DNA of 64,000 nt from Pavona decussata (lineage: Eukaryota): NCBI GenBank assembly GCA_977016875.1, contig CDRNST010000306.1, positions 124,001-188,000 of the forward strand, in the 5' to 3' direction. Made by a program: the position numbers and the translations under genes. Below the pieces are notes generated by a model, which was not told the DNA's origin, searched no databases, and saw nothing but the letters and a program-made list of their open reading frames with translations. Position 1 is the first letter of the stretch. Every line of letters starts with the position of its first letter. Shown here piece after piece: positions 15,991 to 28,500 of the stretch.

Positions 15991-16366
15991 TGAGAACTAA
16001 GCAAGGAATGGTTTATGTGGAGCTGCGCTATTGGTGGGAGCAAAGTAATGAGGAATTAGTCGAATGAAAAGCGTTCGTTGATTCCGTGGGGACAGAGAAG
16101 TGCCAATTTGGAAGATGAATTTTTGCGGCTTTCTGTGTTACCATGATGTAAATATATGCTACAGACTGCCACATGTTTGTACGAATGGTTAGGCAGGTTA
16201 AAGAGTAAGTGACTGGTTGATATGTAACCGTTGGATGCATCTTTGTCATTTCTTTCAAAGTCTCGAAGATGCATGTACTAAGCCCGAATAACAACCGAAG
16301 AAAATGTCAGCAATTAATATTGGCATTTGAGTGATTCGTTCTTCTTCCTTTGTTTACTTCCATAGA

Positions 16367-17263
16367 ATGAACGTATCAAGCACGGAGAACAAGGAAGAGG
16401 GATGGAGACCAAGTACTTCAAATCATGAGATCGTCCTATGGTGCACAGCATTTACCATCACATCTATTGCGGTACTCTGCGCAAACGCACTAGCTATCGT
16501 TGTGTTTACAGTAAAAAGGTTATTGCGCAAGAACAGTAATGTCCTTCTGTTAAATTTGGCCTGCGCTGACCTAATGATCGGCGGCATTGCGATGCCTTTA
16601 TACATTTGTATCTTCTACAAGTCTCTTAGAGGCTATCATTGGCACAACAGGGTCGCAAATGAAATCTACGTTTGCGTGGATATTTTTGCCGGGCTGTCAT
16701 CAATGTTTATTTTGGCAGTTATTGCTTTGGAAAGAGTATACTCTGTCTTCCTTCCCTTCAAACATAGAAGCACATCCAGACGAATCTATTGGTCATCGGT
16801 CGCTCTTGCGTGGATCATGGCCGGATGTCTTGCTTGTGTAAAGCTTTTAACCTACAGAGGAATATTGCCTCTATCATATGACAACAACGTCATCTTAACG
16901 TTCGTTTCTCTCGCCCTGGTCACCATAACTGTCGCCTACGCGTTTATTTGGACAAGAATCCACTCTCGTAGAAAGAAAACCAATGTTATCGTGGATGAGA
17001 CGTCAGTTGTACAAACAATGTTAATAGTCACCGTTACATTTTTATTAATGTGGCTTCCTATTTTTTTGCTTAACGTGGTTGGAAGTTTTGATCATCGAGC
17101 ACTGCTCAAGGTACCTCCAAATGTCGTATATTTTGCAAAATTAATGCAATATTGTAACTCTGGGGTCAATCCCATTATATATTCCTTAAAGATACCGGAA
17201 TTCGGAAAAGCTTTGAGAAGACTGGGGCGTAAGAGTTCGACAAGGATTGTGAGGACAGAATAA
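16367..17263 (+). CDS. Class A GPCR 2, paralog of GPCR 1
   Basis: 7TM with NLACAD, D3.32, LERV, WLP and NPIIY. ATG at 16367 (MNVSS) directly follows a pyrimidine tract and AG acceptor (16364-16365). Confidence 0.95.
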   Translation: MNVSSTENKEEGWRPSTSNHEIVLWCTAFTITSIAVLCANALAIVVFTVKRLLRKNSNVLLLNLACADLMIGGIAMPLYICIFYKSLRGYHWHNRVANEIYVCVDIFAGLSSMFILAVIALERVYSVFLPFKHRSTSRRIYWSSVALAWIMAGCLACVKLLTYRGILPLSYDNNVILTFVSLALVTITVAYAFIWTRIHSRRKKTNVIVDETSVVQTMLIVTVTFLLMWLPIFLLNVVGSFDHRALLKVPPNVVYFAKLMQYCNSGVNPIIYSLKIPEFGKALRRLGRKSSTRIVRTE

Positions 17264-17471: not shown

Positions 17472-17620
17472 GCCCCGGTTGTTCAAAAAGAGCGGATAAC
17501 TATATCCAGCGGATAAGTCGCTATCCTGCGGATAAATAAGTATTGGTTGGAGTACATTTTATTCACTGGATAGCGATTTATCCGCTGGATAATGTCATCC
17601 ACTCTTCGAACAACCAGGGC
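17472..17620. mobile_element. PIF/Harbinger-type MITE with CTG target duplication
   Basis: TIRs gccccggttgttc / gaacaaccagggc, internal tatcc/ggata subrepeats, and CTG on both sides (17469-17471, 17621-17623). Confidence 0.85.
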
Positions 17621-18669
17621 CTGGAAAATAAATCTTGAATGTTTACTTGGAATGCACAAAAATGCAATGTTAAAAATTTTAAATAAAGTAAATGCTCATT
17701 TAAGCTCCACACCCCCACCTCCCGCTCTGTTAAGCCCGCGTTTGAAGACCTTGTTCGTTATTACCAACCCCTCCCACACCGTCACCGTCACCGTCTCGTC
17801 CCAATGGTGCAACCCCCCCCCCCCCCAAAAAAAGAGGAATATTTCGTGTACCAATGCCCAAAACATCATTTAATTTGTATATAGGAAAATTTGGTCTTTA
17901 CTCTGGTCACAGAGGTTTTCTTTCTTCTTTTTGCTCAAACACAATTGAGCCCCGAAGCGGCGACAACGAAGTCAGGTGGATTCTTCCCGCCCCGACTTCA
18001 AACGAATTTGATGTTACTATGGCAACTAATTTTTAACAGGTTCCCAGACAATGGAAGATTCCTGTTATTAATGTACAAAAATTAAATTTCTTTCTGTAAA
18101 TTTTATGTTTTTATATCATTTGCGTGTTTTCTTTTCATTTTGCTTTTGGTGGTTTTCTGTTGTTTTGGGGAAATCAAGAAATCCAAGATGGCCGCTATTT
18201 TTGAAATCTTGCGCAATTCCACGTCATATGACGTCATCGCGATCCGCTGGGGACCTCAAAGGAAACATCTTTGAACGTACTATCCATCCTCCAAGTCTCA
18301 TTGTCATTCCTCGCGAAGCGAGGGCCGAAGGCCCGAGCGTAGCGAGGTTAATAAATTTGTCGGGCCGAAGGCCAGCGCTCGGGAGCCAAGCCGCGCGAAT
18401 TCGAGCGGAAAATATATTTATATATATATATATTTTTTTTTGAAGATGTCCGTTCTGTTGCCTGGCAACAGTGCGCAAACAAAGTATGAATGACGTCAGA
18501 CAAAGGGTGGCGTAAGACGCAATTCGTAGTTGCTATGCAACACAACCGGGTTCAACCGGTCAAAAGTGGCCAGGACTGGTAACTATAAAACCAAACCGCT
18601 GCCTCACAATGGCGCACTCTCATGTTTATTCATTGAGGGCCGAACGTGTTATTCATCACGGAGTAAAAA

Positions 18670-21600
18670 ATGTTTAGTATTGGTGAAACACTACCAAATT
18701 GTGATGCAAATGGACCACAGGAGGACGCACAAGGGACAAGACATATTCGCCGAGGGAGATTAAACAACGAAACTCCTGAACAACGTGAAAGGCGACTTCA
18801 GATTCAGCGCGAGCAGCGAAGGAGAAGGAGACATCAGGAAACCACAGAACAAAGACAACATCGCTTGGCTCAGCAAAGACAGCGCCGTCAGGAAGAAACA
18901 GGGGAGCAGAGGAACCGGAGATTGGAATATCACAGGCAGTACAACCAAGGTAGGCGTGCATTAGAAACTGTAGAAGATAGACAGTTTAGGTTAGATTTAA
19001 CTCGTGCTCGCTTGAATAACGAAACCCCCGCGGCACGTGAGCTTCGATTACATCGAATTCGAAGTAACCAGGCACAGCGACGGATTAATGAGACTGAACA
19101 GGAACGAGATTTACGATTACAAACGCTTCGGACAAACCAGGCACAACGACTGATTAATGAGACTGAACAGGAACGACATTTACGATTACAAACGCTTCGG
19201 ACAAACCAGGCACAACGACTAATTAATGAGACTGAACAGGAACGCGATTTGCGATTACAAACGCTTCGGACAAACCAGTCCATACGAATACAAGCAGAAA
19301 GTGAACAGCAAAGACATGACAGATTACAAATCGCTCGTGACAACACTGCTCGTAGAATAGAAGTTGAAACGAATGAGGAACGACAAAACAGACTCCAATT
19401 GCTTCAACAAAATGGTGCTATGTACAGAGAGAACGAGAGGCTACAGCATGTAGAAGATCAAATTAATCGCGATAGTTATATTTCCAACGGGTGGAGAAAT
19501 GCAGAACAGCCTTTACACGAACAACAATGGGTTCAAACTGAGATGGCAAATTTCCATCGTGCAATGAACAAATTAGAACACCGACAATGTGTAACCTGTA
19601 AGGAAGCTTGGCCAACAAACAATGGTTTAACACTTCAGATTTTCGAATGCCTTAGATGTAAGCGTGATAAGGGAAATCCCAAATTATTCTCCAAGGAAAA
19701 TGACATGGATCCGGGTTGCTTACCAACAGCATTACAAGGCTTAACTGACATTGAGGAAATGCTTATCGCAAGAGCTTGCCCAATTATGTGTGTTTATCGG
19801 AAACATGGTGGACAAAGGGGTTATAAGGGACATGTTTTAAATCTTCCCCAAGACATTCAGGGTTTTCTCTCTAGACTTCCTCCTAATGTTGCACAACTAC
19901 CGTACCTGATAATTCGAAAACATGGAGCTGACAACACACACAGAGATTGTAGAGTTAGAAGACAGAAGGTTCTTGAGGCAATCACATGGCTGAAGGATAA
20001 CAATCCTTTTTATACTGACATTCAAATTGACTATGAAGCTCTCCACCGCTTACCCATCGATGGAGTTCCGTCAGATCTCCCTACAGCTGAGGATCCACAG
20101 CCAAATGCACAGGAACACGCTGCCGAAGAAGACACATCTCAAAACAATGATGATGGCGAAGATTCTCAGCATAGTCATTCCTTCCTCCCACTTCCTCAAG
20201 CTCAACAGTCAGAACAGGATGCAATAAGGGCTTTAATCAATGGAGAAGATCCATTAGACTGGCCATCCAATGATGGTGATCCTATCAATGAATTCCGTAC
20301 AGAGGGTTTAGCTACTATGGCATTTCCAACTCTTTTCCCTTATGGAAAAGGGGATCCCACTAAGAAAACACGCCTTCGAGAAGTTTCTTTAACGGAAGGC
20401 TTCAAACACCTTATTAAGTATGTAGACTGTTCTACAACAGGAACCTTTTCCTGGCGCTTTGCATCACACCCTCGATTTCCATATTGGGCACTCAACATGA
20501 AACAACGCCATCAACTGTTGTCCCAAGCTCGCATCTATCTCACACAAAATCCAGAAGACTCCAATTTAACAATCGAGGAACTTCGTCAAATGGTAGGACA
20601 GATGTCAGCCAACCAGCTCATGAATCGCCTTCAACGTTACGTTGCCAAGATTCAAGGGACAAAGCAGTACTGGTATCAGCGCTACCAGGAACTTAAAGCA
20701 CTCATTACACAAAAAGGGGCTCCCACCTTTTTCTTCACTTTCAGTGCAGCTGACAACTACTGGCCAGATTTACACCGACTGCTACAGGAGCCAAACAATG
20801 CAACACCTTCCATTCGTATTAAAGCTGTCATAGACAATCCACACTTGACAGATTCTTACTTCGTTTCCAGACTGGATGAATTTTCTAACATTTGGCTAGA
20901 TCGAGTATTGCACACAGAATGGAAGTGGTATCGTTTCGAGTGGCAGGCGCGAGGCAGTATTCATGCACATGGCTGTGCAAAGCTTACAAATGATCCAGGC
21001 CTTTGCAACCTCGTAAACACAGCTGTGCAAGGGTGGAAACTAGAGCGAATTCTGCAACTGCAAATGGAACAACCAACCTATGAACAGATGGCAGCTGACT
21101 TTCAACCCCAAATTGAAGCAGGACATCAAGCAACAACAACTGTTATAAAATATGCAGACTGGTTAGTAACCACAATTAATGAGGCCATTCCCCAGGAAAA
21201 CTGGGTTGTCCCTTCCCCACATCCATCATCTTTACTAATTCAAAATGTGCAAAATTTCAATGATGACTACCAAGCCCTTGTCAATTCAGTTGAACGTCAC
21301 ACAAAATGCAGTACAGCATACTGCCTTCGGAAGAAACCTGGACAAGAAGCAGAATGCCGCTTTAATTTCCCAAAGGACTGTCAAGAAGAAACATCACTTG
21401 ACTTCCAACTGATAAGAAAAGCTGGCAGCGATGACCAGGAACTAACAGTTGAAGAAGTCACCCAAGCTCGAGTTAAAGTAACCCTAACTACTAAACGCAA
21501 TGATAGTCGTATTAACTCCCACAACCGAGTAATGCTACAGCACTGGAGAGCCAATGTTGACCTTCAAGCCATCGTTGACACTGACCAATGCATTCGCTAC

Positions 21601-23967
21601 ATGGCTAAGTATGCTACTAAAGGTGAACCAAGATCCCAGTCAGCCACTGAAATCCTGAGTCTTTGTGTAAACAAGCTTCGGGACACAGACATAGCGACAA
21701 CTGCATTGCGAAGTGCAATGATCCAAGTTGTTGGAGAGCGTGACATAGGATCACAAGAAACCGCTCACCTGCTTCTTGGGAAACCCTTGTATTCATCAAC
21801 ATTCTCGTTTCTATGTGTGTCATTAGATGGTAGTCGAAGAGTTCGGACAGGGCAGGACGAAAATGACAATCAAGGCGATGAAGCATTAGATCCTTCAGTA
21901 CTTGATGCTTATGCTGCTCGAGCTAACTGGCAAGAACAGACCCCAAATATTCTTGATCTCAACTTGGTTCAATTTGCCTCAGCTTACTATGTGTCGAAAG
22001 GAGAGCTCAAACGTCGTAAACAAGAAGTAATCATTCGAACATTTCCCAATTTTTCCTCCAATCCATCCGGACAGAACTATGGAAAGTACTGTAAATATCA
22101 GCTGATTAAATACAAACCATGGTCTGGTGAAGTTAATACTGCTTGGAATGGACTTCAAGACTCAGATGACATTCACATACAATGTTACCATGCATTTCTT
22201 ACATTGGACAACGCTGGAGATTACATGCCCATGTTAGCGCAAGAGCAACAACAAGCTCGACGTTACACTGAGGAAGAACAAGACGATGATGATGACGAAG
22301 ATGATGAACCACAGCATGAAGAAGAACCGGAAGAGTGGATGCTCCTGTGTCGCTTAAATCAACAATTTGACCAAAGTGTCTCACAAGAAAACCCAACTCA
22401 GCAAAACTTCCACTTTGACTGGACGACAGCAGGAAGGACAATGCCTCCTGGTTTAGTTCGTGAATCTGCAAATTGGATCACAAAAAGGAGAAATGAAGCA
22501 CGCGAAGACCCAACTGTTGTACACAGGAGACAACACCAGCCTGTTAATCTAGAACAACTAAATGTAGATCAGCGCCTTGCTTACAACATAGTTGCTATGC
22601 ATCATGAAGCTCTCAACAGTGAGGCACCAAATGACCCTCTTCGCATGATAATTACAGGAACAGCAGGATCAGGCAAGTCATTTTTAATCAATGCATTAAT
22701 GACCGTTCTAGGAGATAAGTGTAAGCTGACAGGGACCACTGGAATTGCTGGATACAACATTCAGGGTTGCACATTACACTCTGCGTTGCAGCTGCCAGTG
22801 CGTAACCACAACAATTCTGACTTACAAGGACAAGCACTACAACGTTTGCAACTTCGCTTCACTGGCAAGCATTACCTTATTACTGATGAGATGTCTATGC
22901 TCGGACAGAGGACATTGGCTTGGGTCGATAAGCGTCTGCGCCAGGCTACAGGTAAGCTTAATGAACCACTTGGAGGAATTTCAATGATCTTGCTTGGAGA
23001 TTTCGCACAATTGCCACCTGTTGGAGACAAGCCTATTTTTGCAACATCACCCAGTTCAATTCTAGGTCAACATGGTTTTTCAATATATACTCTTTTCGAA
23101 ACAGTGGTGATGCTAAGGCAAAACATTAGACAGGCAGGAAATAATCCACAGGCTGAAGTTTTCCGAGAACTTCTTATGCGTATGCGAAATGGCCAAAGCA
23201 CGCAATGCGACTGGCAAAAACTTTGCGAACGTACACCACAGCACATCAACATGGACAACTTCAAAGATGCGCCACGGTTATTTTTCGACAAGGCAAGTGT
23301 AGCAAACTACAATTATGAGAAACTTAGCAACCTGGCAACACCAGTTGCTCGCATCTCTGCTGTTCATTCAGGCAGAAATGCAAAGGCTGCTACATCAGAT
23401 GATGCTGGAGGTCTTGAGGCTGTCACATTTCTTGCAAGAGGAGCAGCTGTAATGCTAACATGTAACCTTTGGCAGGAAGTTGGATTGTGTAATGGTGCAT
23501 CAGGGGTTGTACACGACCTCATCTTCCATCCTGAGCGCCCTCCCCCCTGTTTACCTATTGCAGCACTGGTGGATTTTCAGCACTACACAGGACCACCTTT
23601 CCTGCATACACACCCTCAGGTTGTCCCCATACCACCACACTTATTTGAATGGGAAACTGAAGGCCAACGATTGTCAAGACAGCAACTGCCACTTCGTTTA
23701 AGCTATGCAATGACCATTCACAAGTCGCAAGGCCAAACATTATCTACAGCGGTTATTGACTTAGGAAAAGCAGAAAGAGCTGCAGGATGTAGTTTTGTGG
23801 CACTCTCTAGAGTACGCTCTTTAGATAATGTAGTTCTCCAGCCATTGTCCTTTCAAAGACTCCAGGCGATAGCTAAAAGCAAGCAATTACAACAAAGGCT
23901 AAGAGAAGAGGAACGATTACAACAACTGGCTGATATCACCGCACGTCAATATCAGAACCGCGATTAA
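18670..23967 (+). CDS. RepHel transposase: STPR-like repeats, CxxC-CxxC, HUH/Y2 Rep and PIF1-family SF1B helicase
   Basis: Uninterrupted 1765-aa ORF. Rep motif I PTFFFTFS, motif II RFEWQARGSIHAH (His codons ~20962-20970) and motif III YMAKYATK (21598-21621). Helicase Walker A GTAGSGKS (22657-22680), Walker B LITDEMSM, GDFAQLPPV, TIHKSQGQT and VALSRV. Confidence 0.95.
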   Translation: MFSIGETLPNCDANGPQEDAQGTRHIRRGRLNNETPEQRERRLQIQREQRRRRRHQETTEQRQHRLAQQRQRRQEETGEQRNRRLEYHRQYNQGRRALETVEDRQFRLDLTRARLNNETPAARELRLHRIRSNQAQRRINETEQERDLRLQTLRTNQAQRLINETEQERHLRLQTLRTNQAQRLINETEQERDLRLQTLRTNQSIRIQAESEQQRHDRLQIARDNTARRIEVETNEERQNRLQLLQQNGAMYRENERLQHVEDQINRDSYISNGWRNAEQPLHEQQWVQTEMANFHRAMNKLEHRQCVTCKEAWPTNNGLTLQIFECLRCKRDKGNPKLFSKENDMDPGCLPTALQGLTDIEEMLIARACPIMCVYRKHGGQRGYKGHVLNLPQDIQGFLSRLPPNVAQLPYLIIRKHGADNTHRDCRVRRQKVLEAITWLKDNNPFYTDIQIDYEALHRLPIDGVPSDLPTAEDPQPNAQEHAAEEDTSQNNDDGEDSQHSHSFLPLPQAQQSEQDAIRALINGEDPLDWPSNDGDPINEFRTEGLATMAFPTLFPYGKGDPTKKTRLREVSLTEGFKHLIKYVDCSTTGTFSWRFASHPRFPYWALNMKQRHQLLSQARIYLTQNPEDSNLTIEELRQMVGQMSANQLMNRLQRYVAKIQGTKQYWYQRYQELKALITQKGAPTFFFTFSAADNYWPDLHRLLQEPNNATPSIRIKAVIDNPHLTDSYFVSRLDEFSNIWLDRVLHTEWKWYRFEWQARGSIHAHGCAKLTNDPGLCNLVNTAVQGWKLERILQLQMEQPTYEQMAADFQPQIEAGHQATTTVIKYADWLVTTINEAIPQENWVVPSPHPSSLLIQNVQNFNDDYQALVNSVERHTKCSTAYCLRKKPGQEAECRFNFPKDCQEETSLDFQLIRKAGSDDQELTVEEVTQARVKVTLTTKRNDSRINSHNRVMLQHWRANVDLQAIVDTDQCIRYMAKYATKGEPRSQSATEILSLCVNKLRDTDIATTALRSAMIQVVGERDIGSQETAHLLLGKPLYSSTFSFLCVSLDGSRRVRTGQDENDNQGDEALDPSVLDAYAARANWQEQTPNILDLNLVQFASAYYVSKGELKRRKQEVIIRTFPNFSSNPSGQNYGKYCKYQLIKYKPWSGEVNTAWNGLQDSDDIHIQCYHAFLTLDNAGDYMPMLAQEQQQARRYTEEEQDDDDDEDDEPQHEEEPEEWMLLCRLNQQFDQSVSQENPTQQNFHFDWTTAGRTMPPGLVRESANWITKRRNEAREDPTVVHRRQHQPVNLEQLNVDQRLAYNIVAMHHEALNSEAPNDPLRMIITGTAGSGKSFLINALMTVLGDKCKLTGTTGIAGYNIQGCTLHSALQLPVRNHNNSDLQGQALQRLQLRFTGKHYLITDEMSMLGQRTLAWVDKRLRQATGKLNEPLGGISMILLGDFAQLPPVGDKPIFATSPSSILGQHGFSIYTLFETVVMLRQNIRQAGNNPQAEVFRELLMRMRNGQSTQCDWQKLCERTPQHINMDNFKDAPRLFFDKASVANYNYEKLSNLATPVARISAVHSGRNAKAATSDDAGGLEAVTFLARGAAVMLTCNLWQEVGLCNGASGVVHDLIFHPERPPPCLPIAALVDFQHYTGPPFLHTHPQVVPIPPHLFEWETEGQRLSRQQLPLRLSYAMTIHKSQGQTLSTAVIDLGKAERAAGCSFVALSRVRSLDNVVLQPLSFQRLQAIAKSKQLQQRLREEERLQQLADITARQYQNRD
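18769..19434 (+). repeat. Coding tandem array of ~10 E-T-x3-R-x2-R-L units (19-23 aa), including three near-identical 69-bp units
   Basis: attaatgagactgaacaggaacg recurs at 19084, 19153 and 19222 (69-bp period). Unit: ETEQERDLRLQTLRTNQAQRLIN. Confidence 0.9.
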
Positions 23968-24450
23968 TATTTCACATATTTTACAAATGAAGCCTCATCT
24001 TAAAATCTCATATAGGCAGTCTCTAAATGCTACATATTTTTTTCTTCTTAAGGTAAGTCATTACAAGTAAAGTGCACTTTTCAAATTTTTTTATTCCAGC
24101 ATAAAATTTATTTCATACATTTTAGTTCAGCTAGTGTTGCCAGTATAGATGTAGCATAAACATAAATCTTAACATTCTAACCTCTTCTGCAAGGTAAGTG
24201 ACAACAACATTGCAGTTCAATGTCAAAACATAACTTTTGTCATTTAGTACTTTTTGCTCAATATCAAAATTATATATCCAGGCTACAGTAAAAACAACTT
24301 CATTACTGAATAGTCATGAGGTGAGACTCACGGGAATGCACTTTTTTGACAAAAAAAATAGTAATATCTTATCCATTCAATTTTCCCTCAGTCTTGCCTC
24401 GCAACTATTCACTGAGCACTCATAACAAAGAGAAAATTACATCACTGTTA

Positions 24451-24607
24451 TAATTGAAGGGGTGCGCGAGATAAGGCCCTAAATGACTTTTGATGTAGAG
24501 TAAAATTCTCCTTTTGTTTCACAAGCGAATGCAAGGAAATTTGGAAGGAGAATTTAGCACTTTATCAGAAGCAACTTAGTGCTTTTTTCCAGGCACCTCT
24601 TCAATTA
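24451..24607. mobile_element. Palindromic MITE nested in the 3' region of the rolling-circle element
   Basis: Ends taattgaaggggtgc / gcacctcttcaatta (1 mismatch), with continued inverted similarity (aaattctcctt / aaggagaattt). Confidence 0.75.
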
Positions 24608-24717
24608 CAATCACTTCCCATACTGCCAACTGAAGTTGTATTCTTTAAAGCAACCGCAATCACATGTTATCACTACAATGCACATATTTTGTTTATGCAA
24701 ATAAAAGCAGTTGCAAC

Positions 24718-24861
24718 TATAACAAATGTTGTACTTATTGATTAGCATGGAGGCAGGGAAGGTACGAGGGGGGGGGGGGGGGGGTGGCGCGGTTGAAGTT
24801 TTACCAACCCAAATATAACAAATGTTGTACTTATTGATTAGTATGGGGGGGGGGGGGGGGG
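24718..24861. repeat. Duplicated 28-bp motif, each copy followed by a G17 tract
   Basis: tataacaaatgttgtacttattgattag at 24718-24745 and 24814-24841. G runs at 24768-24784 and 24845-24861. Confidence 0.85.
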
Positions 24862-25375
24862 TTGCAGGGTTGGAGAGCAAAAAGAGGTGCAATACTTTTC
24901 CATACTTCTTTTCCAATGCAGGATTCTCTTTGCCTACATGTTGGTTTTCCACTATTTCTTTTTCCTGATTTGGGACACCCCCCCCCCCCCTCCTTCCTTC
25001 ACATTTCTAATGCTGTATCCCTAACCTGCTGTTAACCACAGTGTATCACTCCCATAGTCTGTGAGAATGACGTCACACAGAGTGGGTGTGGTAAAACCAA
25101 TTTAAGCAGGGTGGGGCTGTTTCAAGGAGAACACGAGACCATTGATATTTTCTAGCTGCCTTTGCCCCTTCCCTACAAATCAACTGTACACCTACCCCGA
25201 GCTTCGCGAGGTTTTGCGAGTCACGTATTTCTAGTAGCTTTTATACTTGTTATATTATCTCCCGGCTCCAGAAGACAAAAAAACCTGGTCAAAAAATGTT
25301 AAATAATCTCGAAAAATTAACGCCCCGTCACAAATCAATAGGGAGCTGCACAAGCTACGAAAGAAGAGGTGACCA

Positions 25376-25575
25376 GCAGATAAGCTGTTACAGCGCTTTC
25401 ACAAGCACTTAGGTGGGTAACGATGAAAGCAAAATCAAATAAATAAGGGGTTCTTTCGATAGCCAGGAGCATAGTCAAGTAAGTCAACTTGCACATCGAA
25501 GGTGGTGCAATCCCAACCGTCAAGAAGCAGCCAGTCAAGAGCCTTAGACCTCTGTACACGGTCCCCTTGATCGAC
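25376..25575 (+). pseudogene. Decayed non-LTR retrotransposon RT C-terminal fragment (RLE-type clades such as HERO/NeSL)
   Basis: Translates with one frameshift and two stops to ADKLLQRFHKH/LRWVTMKAKSNK*GVLSIARSIVK*VNLHIEGGAIPTVKKQPVKSLRPLYTVPLID. This resembles the WxxMKxKPxKSxxLSI...IPTVxExPVKSLG motif. Confidence 0.6.
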
Positions 25576-28500
25576 TACTTCCTGGCCCTGTCCCTGTCCG
25601 ATAGATAGGTGATATCTGTTGCCATTGAAACCAGATTTCAGACGGCTAACCTCAGTTTTGTAATTTATTTAATCAATAAGAGTTGTCTTTCGTGCCTCAT
25701 CGTGTCCTCGATGTCGAAAATTCTCGCTAAAAAAAAAAGACGGCAATAAACCGGTGTATGCATAGTTTTAACATCATACTTAGTGACTTTAAGTGGAATC
25801 TAATGAGACTGCCATTTCCTCCGTTCAAATTGCAACTTTGGAAAGTCTTTTTAACCTCCAGTTAAAGGTTATATTTGATATCAAGACAACATGGTTCGAA
25901 TATCAACAGAGTAAGCTGCTAAATTCATGAAATATTAGCTTAAGTGAGCTTTTATAAAGATGATGAGGTTGGGCTGAGGTTGTGTTGTTTCTCTTGGCTT
26001 GTCTTCCTCGCCGAACATTCATAATCTTTTTTATTTCCCGCCTTTCCCGTCCTAGGCTCCCGGTTGCTTAACGACAATCAAGTCATGTTGACGACGGCGA
26101 TGTGGAACCAGTCCTTTTTGTCCCACAGACGTCGCCGTCCTCCTCTCCCGTCCTGGTGTTTTTAAAAAAGCTCTATTAAGACAGCGAGGACGCAGCACGC
26201 AAATCGTGAAATTGTACTTTCAGTTTAGTTTCTTGTGTGTATGAGAGATTACGACTGTCTATTCAAAGATTTCTTATGTTTTTAACTTGTTACTATTAAA
26301 GTTTTTCTCTATTTCTCTTTCACTATTGTGATGGCAAGGGAAATTCAGGGCTTTTGGCCCTATTTAAACGGCTGCATAGGATACGTCGCATGTTCGGAGG
26401 ACGAACAACTGTGTTAGAGATACACTTAGCAAGACACCTGCAATTAGTAATCATTTGAAAAATCGTGTAGCTCGTCCAATGACCGATGGTTAACACGTTT
26501 TATTAGCCCATAATATGTAAATCATATTGGCTCCCATTTTAAGCTTCTTCTAGTGGCTTCCATGAAAAGCTTTTTTCTAATCAGTTCATGCTGACTGATT
26601 GGCTAATTACCGTAATTTTTCATATAAATCTTTCGCTTGAAATCCCAAGGGCACATTAATGACGATTACAGTTCACAACGCATTTCGCGAATTCGACCTT
26701 ATTAACTAGTCCAAACTACGCAACCGTTTCAGATCGGCTTTGTCACAGTTTGACAGAACCAAAACATTTTTTATTAGTATGACAGAAAAATTCTCATCGA
26801 AAAAGTAAAAAACTCGATCAGTGAATTTTATCGGTTAATTTTATCCTGACATAAGTGTTTCCAATTCAAGATTTGACGTTGGCTAATACGGAGTGTTACT
26901 CTTATCTACGTAGACCATGATCTGCAAACAAAAGTAAAAGGTTTTTTTTTTTTTGCTTTTAATCGAGCGAAGGAACAGGTGACGCCATTCAAGTACATTT
27001 TAACTGGTGTATTTATAATGAGTTTTGTTTTTATTCATCGCGTACAATAGCTGAGTTTTAGTTTGAGTTAATGGCAATGCACCGCTGAGATGAATGTCGC
27101 TTTAGCCATCAGTATTCACAACGATGGCTTCGTCGCCGTAAATTTGATTATTGATCTTGAAGCACGGTTTGCCAGCAAGGTATAGAATTTAACGTAAACG
27201 CTAGTAAGGATTCCGCCATTTACCTAACTGTGGCTTTGGAATGTATGTAACTCACGTCAAAAAACCGTATGACCTTGACTACAATTCTTTATTTTGTGTA
27301 CCCACAATCCCCTGCTGTTTTAGTCAATAAAGAAATATTTGAGGAATACGTCTGCCGGGAATTAGCTTAGTTCGGTCGACCGTCATACCGCGCGCGTGAA
27401 CCAAACAACAACGCAAAACTTAAGGTCGCAGCTGTTGCAGTAATATGCATATAAATTCTCCCATGTAACGGATTCATCGCCTCTGTTGTTTCTGCTAGGT
27501 TGACACTTGGTAGCGAATTGAAGCTTTCTCAACGAAAAGCGAACCTCAGAGCGATCTCCGGTCCGGACGGTTAGTATACTGCATTTGTTTTTCTCATTGA
27601 CACCCCTTTCCCTTGAGTCAAATCGACGGAGCTAGTTTAAAAAAAGAAACTAATGGGTACCTTAAATTGTTGGCGCGGTTGGTGAGAAAATTTAACACCA
27701 AAAACAAAGGCCCTGGCGGAGAATAAACATTTTAGCAAGTCCGTGAGCGTCGTGAACCACCGAGTACACAACCGGCTCGGTTACGGGTAAATACAAACAA
27801 GAAGAACTTAAAATATTGCTTGAAAATTCATTGTTTTTGAGATGTTTCCTAGCTTCTAAAAATAACTTATTTGTTCACACAGCAATGACCGCTAATCTAT
27901 ATTTCGCATTTGTCTCAACTTTGATTGGATTTTGATTTGAGTTAAGCATTGAACTCTGATCTAGGGGAAAAATATTGCCTCTGTTTTAAACTATTTAACT
28001 CAGACTTCAGCCTAATTTAGGAGGAATAAACAGGATACATGTTAACTCTATGCCCTCAAAAAATAAGAAAATAACCAGAGAGATACAGTTAAAAAAAGTA
28101 AGCTAGATAAAGTCCGGTTATATTTTTAATTTGTGCCAGGCCGCCACCGCATTTTTTTTATATCTATATAGTTTATAAACGATCAACTTAAAACGACATG
28201 AATGGCGAACTCCACAAAATGAAGCAGACGGTAAGATTTACATTCAGTGGCAACCAGCCCTGTTGCGATAGCAGTGAACAAAAATGAACCTCAGGGTGCA
28301 GAGCTTTTGACACTCAAATATTGCTGCGGGGATTATGTTTTGTTATTTTATTGTATAAAAGTACATTTTATTGAACGCCGTAAACGAATCTAGAAGCATC
28401 TAGAAAGAGTCCGGTGTTCCTCATAAATCATGCATTGTGTATCCTTTTCACGACCTTTCTAAATTTACGAACTTAAAAATGCTCTGCGGGATTCAACATT

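Follow-up and report, generated by a model that had tools for sequence, protein, structure and literature searches.

Among the described rolling-circle transposons, Helitron2 elements have been defined by a protein that joins Rep and helicase (RepHel) without endonuclease, a T at the 5' end, a 5' repeat that lies 0-2 bp from this end and forms a hairpin, and a 3' repeat 20-30 bp inside the other end (PMC3627910); the DUF6570 domain has in addition been reported as HLE2-specific (PMC11417382). Here we compare with these systems a transposon found in a 64,000-nucleotide stretch of the Pavona decussata genome (hereafter the window; contig CDRNST010000306.1 of the 602-Mb assembly GCA_977016875.1, C306:124001-188000; positions are counted from its first letter). 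This element carries a RepHel, has its 5' and 3' repeats at the Helitron2 distances, forms a 5' hairpin and sits in a T-rich target that is cut before a T. With a probability of about 85%, we consider it an autonomous Helitron2-type transposon (HLE2 group without endonuclease) of a stony coral, the window copy of which belongs to a functional sublineage. The element is complete, looks still functional and is an ordinary new member of the known Helitron2 group.

Its likeness to endonuclease-free Helitron2/HLE2 elements covers the single RepHel open reading frame (ORF), the 5' hairpin, the repeat positions, the 5' T, insertion without duplication and DUF6570; it differs from Helitron2 by a CTAG 3' end, a weak 3' hairpin that overlaps the repeat, an N-terminal STPR array and a relaxed target, T-W-D|T-W (the bar marks the cut), as against TTTT|T/C in Chlamydomonas (PMC3627910). 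FoHeli1 and FoHeli2 of Fusarium oxysporum likewise begin with T(T)C followed by a stem-GAA-stem hairpin, and they share with the coral element a repeat of 11-12 bp, a target (TNA(T)|T/A) whose boundary is likewise ambiguous by one T, a length of ~6 kb and the lack of an endonuclease, but they have a fungal host, an ATTTT 3' end and, in some members, a second small ORF (PMC5148889). Helentrons and the HINE/DINE-1 elements derived from them resemble it in the HLE2-type Rep signature, in inverted repeats that are subterminal, in T-rich targets and in having tandem copies and numerous short non-autonomous partners; Helentrons, however, carry an apurinic/apyrimidinic endonuclease on the RepHel C-terminus, and often OTU or RPA genes, none of which is present in the coral element, and their 3' repeat is set 38-60 bp inside the element rather than 23 nt (PMC4067079).

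Proto-Helentron-Pi of Phytophthora infestans shows the same 5' TT and 3' CTAG (subject, in the coral element, to a one-T ambiguity), an endonuclease-free HLE2-type RepHel (PMC4067079), DUF6570 and inverted repeats of ~12 nt (PMC4067079, PMC11417382). Unlike the coral element, it is ~14 kb long with SET, TIR and other genes, is reported to insert at A|T, is known from oomycetes only and has the 'HLE2-reverse' layout, in which the 5' stem-loop lies ~3.6 kb upstream of the left repeat (PMC11417382) and not 2 nt from the end. Canonical Helitrons (HLE1, e.g. Helraiser, PDB 7lcc) resemble it in the HUH-Y2 Rep, the Pif1-like helicase, the rolling circle, the absence of duplication and a 3' end of CTAG type (CTRR) with a T behind it, but they start with TC, form a single hairpin, at the 3' end, and insert at A|T; terminal inverted repeats, a 5' hairpin and DUF6570 are missing from them and present in the coral element, the target of which is not A|T; the match of its transposase to Helraiser is weak (E = 2e-10) and confined to the helicase.

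Ends, target and empty sites

The boundaries of the element were fixed by aligning the junctions of genome copies. All 30 recovered 5' ends start with TTCCTCGCG and all 48 recovered 3' ends close with CACGTATTTCTAG, and the sequences beyond are unrelated on both sides. The two terminal segments of the window copy each match many genome loci, with similarity breaking at 18307 and 25234, and the contigs built from public reads, which are fragmentary, break at 18306/18307 into other flanks, confirming the 5' boundary. Such terminal features are far beyond chance. The host bases next to the element are A at 18306 and T at 25235. The element begins with a T and a T always follows, so that TT...CTAG inserted at N|T and TC...CTAGT inserted at T|W are indistinguishable from the strings.

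The features listed in a first, sequence-only reading of this stretch (a stop-free ORF of 1765 aa, the motif RGSIHAH, an 11-bp inverted repeat, CTAG, A and T flanks, no endonuclease) all proved accurate, and the doubt it expressed over one T at the 5' boundary (TT at 18307 or TC at 18308) is real. Two checks that it proposed were run: the flanks of genomic copies returned fixed termini and the target T-W-D|T-W, and the search for empty sites returned a paralogous site of the window copy, colinear across 18306|25235. The TT...CTAG ends are thus fixed across copies and verified by empty sites.

Across the 30 copies with a 5' flank, position -3 is always T, position -2 is T in 17, A in 10 and C in 3, and position -1 is A in 14, T in 8, G in 7 and C in 1; on the other side, +1 is T in 47/48 and +2 is A or T in 48/48. 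The family target is T-W-D|T-W, with no strict A|T. Of the A|T target proposed initially, the T at +1 is nearly invariant, but the A at -1 amounts to a 47% preference, by which a strict A|T rule is excluded, and the motif can also be written as T|T or T|A.

Four pre-insertion sites, empty or reconstructed, were found. One is a paralogue of the window's own flanks on C182 (L011), 81% identical and gapless through 18306|25235; in a second, one non-autonomous copy lies within another at ATATTTA|TATAT, a site that was compared with uninterrupted copies; in a third, the C206/C321 copy lies inside a ~23-bp minisatellite, the neighbouring units of which are colinear with the joined flanks; and in the fourth, a copy sits within a (TAA)n run. 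In 4/4 cases excision of TT...CTAG restores the site, which holds a single T and no duplication. We therefore reject the insertion of TC...CTAG at T|T, which would take the T at 18307 and the T at 25235 as host bases.

Copies also meet each other in the genome, through the junctions CTAG-TTCC, CTAG-TTA-TTCC, CTAG-TAA-TTCC and CTAG-TTATTA-TTCC, the first being a genomic head-to-tail junction at C59:300204; unlike these direct and spaced forms, CTAG-TCC is absent from the genome. The host of the window insertion is itself another repeat (18157-18306 and 25235-25420). The minisatellite copies on C321 and C206 (L067 and L069) are one insertion, with a repeat unit like GGGGGTTAGTTTTCTTACGTTT and flanks 97% identical between contigs, and the pair probably represents haplotigs or a segmental duplication.

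The two 11-bp arms of the asymmetric terminal inverted repeat (ATIR) are exact reverse complements. The 5' arm is unchanged in copies and in a second coral assembly, and the variants seen, GCTTCGTGAGG among them, resemble the outcome of CpG decay in old copies. The 84-nt 5' terminus folds at -20.2 kcal/mol (z = -2.3). At the other end, the stem bases of the 3' hairpin are kept in other corals while its loop changes, and the last ~35 bp are conserved even in subfamilies with the remaining 3' region ~70% identical.

Transposase, genome copies and cnidarian relatives

The transposase is encoded by the only long ORF of the region (Table 1). Its alignment to the human PIF1 helicase reaches aa 1721/1765, and the frame stops 44 aa later. 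Exo_endo_phos has no Pfam match in the 1765-aa ORF. A degenerate endonuclease 3' of the ORF was also considered and rejected, the ORFs of 23968-25234 (1.27 kb) giving no Pfam match. The same domain was found in 0/129 near relatives (120 checked by precomputed Pfam and 9 scanned), and all nine scanned nearest representatives combine DUF6570, Helitron_like_N and PIF1, in some cases together with OTU or UCH.

Among the 120 best word-based relatives, every named species is a cnidarian (Oculina, Paramuricea, Exaiptasia, Clytia, Dendronephthya). An exhaustive search of representatives gave one cluster at 56% identity and then no full-length match above ~40%. Closer relatives, ~75% identical in coding DNA, are present in two other coral assemblies, one from ENA and one of Oculina patagonica (GCA_052425735.1). 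The start of the ENA copy retains TTCCTCGCGAAGCGAGG, and the 5' end of the Oculina patagonica copy was not found; the GCTTCGCGAGG repeat and the CACGTATTACTAG end are present in both, and the flanks read tta| and |ta in the former and |tc in the latter. For two relatives at ~55% identity (L073 and L074), an inverted-repeat scan for termini was too noisy without several copies to compare. Since every named relative is cnidarian and the sequencing runs bear a coral label, the initial description as an intact autonomous rolling-circle transposon of a cnidarian holds.

Within the genome, ~10 autonomous copies of 7-7.6 kb are 94-97% identical to the window copy in the coding region. They are accompanied by deletion derivatives of 0.7-3.8 kb and by short non-autonomous copies, numbering between several hundred and about 1,000, which like the autonomous ones have exactly the ends of the element, including a large family of ~623-bp copies that retain only its first 195 bp and last 46 bp; the sampled members of this family are 96.6-99.4% identical to their majority sequence, and no two are identical. 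With up to 2 mismatches, the terminal 5' 27-mer has 394 genome matches and the terminal 3' 34-mer has 1046, against 0 for either reversed control. This ~2.7 to 1 excess of 3' termini genome-wide points to numerous copies truncated at the 5' end, or to additional non-autonomous families with only the 3' end in common, as reported for Chlamydomonas Helitron2 elements.

A recurrent 'double head' was also observed, in which the first ~115 bp of a copy are directly followed by a complete copy (L017, L018, L021), and paired 5' ends lie 45-113 bp apart on C10, C38 and C54. The double head reflects nested insertion at ATATTTA|TATAT in the 5' region, either as a hot spot or as an amplified composite.

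Copies further vary in the ORF and in its 3' flank. The number of STPR-like 23-aa repeats differs among L061-L070 (offset self-matches, in 69-nt steps), and this region is 83-91% identical between copies as against 94-97% for the rest of the ORF. Between 24885 and 24886 (element 6579/6580), the window copy is without ~485-540 bp carried by the four autonomous copies most closely related to it (L061, L062, L063 and L070); the more distant L064-L069 have extra or divergent sequence in the 3' non-coding region too. In Paramuricea clavata, the related RepHel gene of one contig is directly followed by an ORF of 271 aa that carries a Baculo_FP_2nd domain (L074 6458-7273). Around the coral element, a host gene stands ~1 kb upstream (16331-17263, plus strand; an intronless ORF of 310 aa encoding a rhodopsin-family G protein-coupled receptor, 7tm_1, E = 1.3e-29), and no known RNA family occurs within 17500-26000.

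Table 1. Annotated features of the coral element and its target, in window positions.
Feature	Position	Strand	Details
5' half of target	18304..18306	+	TCA here; family motif T-W-D; flank logo
Whole autonomous element	18307..25234	+	6928 bp; TT...CTAG; equally TC...CTAGT at 18308-25235
5' cis region	18307..18501	+	195 bp; common to ~623-bp non-autonomous copies
5' ATIR	18309..18319	+	CCTCGCGAAGC; 2 nt from end (1 nt if start is TC)
5' terminal hairpin	18309..18323	+	6-bp stem CCTCGC/GCGAGG, GAA loop, uses 5' ATIR; DNA fold
Two GGCC-GAA-GGCC mini-hairpins	18323-18333, 18363-18373 (region 18323..18373)	+	Within longer stem; fold
Rep/helicase transposase ORF	18670..23967	+	1765 aa, no stop, no intron
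STPR-like N-terminal helical repeats	18769..19434	+	Pfam STPRs, 5 stretches; PDB FMBP-1 5d23, E = 1.8e-6
CxxC...CxxC zinc-finger-like motif	19588..19659	+	Motif location
DUF6570	19678..20043	+	aa 337-458; Pfam E = 2.7e-31
Rep, Helitron_like_N	20455..20973	+	aa 596-768; Pfam E = 5.8e-31
HUH motif RGSIHAH	20932-20970	+	In RFEWQARGSIHAH, aa 755-767
Two-tyrosine motif YMAKYATKG	21598..21624	+	aa 977-985
Pif1-like SF1 helicase	22558..23832	+	Pfam PIF1 aa 1297-1512, E = 1.4e-23, plus Pif1 2B domain
Walker A GTAGSGKS	22657-22680	+	aa 1330-1337
Non-coding 3' region	23968..25188	+	No endonuclease remnant
3' cis region	25189..25234	+	46 bp; common to non-autonomous copies
3' ATIR	25201..25211	+	GCTTCGCGAGG; 23 nt from end
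3' hairpin, weak	25204..25219	+	TCGCGA/TTGCGA, overlaps 3' ATIR; fold
3' terminal CTAG	25231..25234	+	TAG plus following T itself fits target motif
3' half of target	25235..25236	+	TA here; family motif T-W; flank logo

Selection, activity and rival readings

The substitution pattern of the window ORF bears on its function. Its pairwise ratio of non-synonymous to synonymous rates (dN/dS) against other copies is 0.13-0.31, and 45 changes in 4488 nt are private to it, 33 synonymous and 12 non-synonymous; with 73% of them synonymous, neutral change since insertion would be at most ~0.4%. The private changes of most other copies are mainly non-synonymous (synonymous to non-synonymous, e.g. 2:16, 3:18, 21:57), as expected from decay after insertion. 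From this comparison the window copy appears to be a separate sublineage, selected as functional until at or near its insertion, and recent activity is plausible. Among the ten other autonomous copies examined, the frame is broken in eight; the copy on C206 retains a 1741-aa ORF, and the C93 copy has an open frame of 1789 codons, 1515 aa from the first ATG, with its 5' region disrupted by extra sequence.

Several observations weigh against a functional Helitron2-type element. No copy in the genome is closer than 97% to the window copy. In public reads, no empty allele was seen among the fragmentary contigs, none of those listed bridging the junction, and clear transcription was not seen either, the depth over the ORF in two RNA libraries being about that of DNA carry-over from a 10-30-copy repeat. 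The 3' hairpin (6-bp stem, -3.5 kcal/mol) folds no better than shuffles, and the repeats show conservation only, with no compensatory changes among copies or other corals. Textbook descriptions of HLE2 include neither CTAG at the 3' end nor a bias to A at -1, and the element is placed in this group by domain markers and similarity rather than by a curated-reference tree. Finally, we infer both the strand-switch role of the repeats and the common cleavage motif (the latter from logos). The claim of recent activity gains some support from the signatures of selection, but none from the reads.

Some of these observations would also suit an element of the same class that is an old, fixed and silent relic, its ORF open by chance and its family extinct in the coral, which we regard as possible but doubtful. 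The closest autonomous copies differ by 3-6% and are mostly broken, the sampled non-autonomous copies stand 0.6-3.4% from their majority sequence with none identical, and the public reads hold neither an empty allele nor a clear transcript. However, neutral change of more than ~1% would be likely to close a 5.3-kb ORF, the private changes of the window copy bound its neutral decay at ~0.4%, and the C206 copy retains a long ORF as well.

The sequence-only reading had seen in this element a hybrid architecture, with proto-Helentron termini and Helitron2-like repeats, and suggested a possible intermediate lineage. Such a lineage would stand between canonical Helitrons and Helentrons, as an animal counterpart of the oomycete proto-Helentron in which a Helentron-like Rep goes with an A|T target and ends of the Helitron kind. 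The HLE2/Helentron-type Rep and asymmetric inverted repeats of that reading are supported by our analysis, the ends can be written 5' TT and 3' CTAG as reported for proto-Helentron-Pi (PMC4067079), A is the commonest base at -1 with a nearly invariant T at +1, and the nearest 50%-identity cluster representative outside the clade of the element is 37% identical. Nevertheless, the intermediate lineage is very unlikely and the hybrid description does not stand: all the 'mixed' features fall inside the Helitron2 definition (PMC3627910), and the target matches that of FoHeli (PMC5148889), A occupying -1 in under half of the copies while the invariant T at -3 gives an HLE2-like TNN|T. The layout, too, is that of canonical HLE2, with the stem-loop 2 nt from the end where proto-Helentrons have it ~3.6 kb upstream of the left repeat (PMC11417382), and the relatives belong to a large cnidarian radiation of RepHel proteins that carry DUF6570 and no endonuclease. 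The hybrid reading arose because Helitron2 and Helentron were not kept apart and because a relaxed -1 position was taken for an A|T target; behind the textbook contrast 'HLE1 = A|T, HLE2 = T|T' lies a boundary that is ambiguous by one base, and this contrast is therefore insufficient alone for such a call.

That the ORF is a non-mobile host gene domesticated from a Helitron transposase is hardly credible: it is under purifying selection, but the window copy has intact, family-typical termini, its paralogous empty site marks an insertion, and its family is a multi-copy one, hundreds of whose members are derivatives mobilised in trans.

Proposed transposition mechanism and significance

A mechanism for this Helitron2-type element can be proposed from established Helitron and HUH transposase biology. 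Rep would nick at T-W-D|TT on the top strand, immediately before the element, and become linked to the 5' T, and the Pif1-like helicase would then peel the strand off 5' to 3'. The 5' repeat, held at first in its own GAA-loop hairpin, would later pair with the emerging 3' repeat and so give the stop signal, a repeat-pairing switch hypothesised by Bao and Jurka (PMC3627910). The second tyrosine would cleave after CTAG, and a single-stranded circle with the junction CTAG-TTCC would insert at T-W-D|T-W without duplication. The three cleavage sites (the 5' junction, the 3' junction TAG|T and the target) may be of one common form, T-W-D|T, which would explain the head-to-tail copies. The ~623-bp non-autonomous copies, with their 195 bp and 46 bp, would be mobilised in trans.

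A bolder proposal is that one T-W-D|T rule makes the family an HLE2 of relaxed specificity, a bridge between the 'A|T, CTAG' of canonical Helitrons and the 'T|T' of Helentrons, the window copy being intact and mobile with the 195 + 46 bp as its cis set. We hold this to be rather unlikely; if true, the window copy with its minimal cis set of 195 bp and 46 bp would be usable as the first experimentally tractable HLE2 transposon. Altogether, the analysis provides a cleanly delimited, intact Helitron2 family in a reef coral, with verified ends, a target motif, a copy census and minimal cis sequences, of use for coral repeat annotation and as a candidate for functional work on HLE2, which is far less studied than HLE1.

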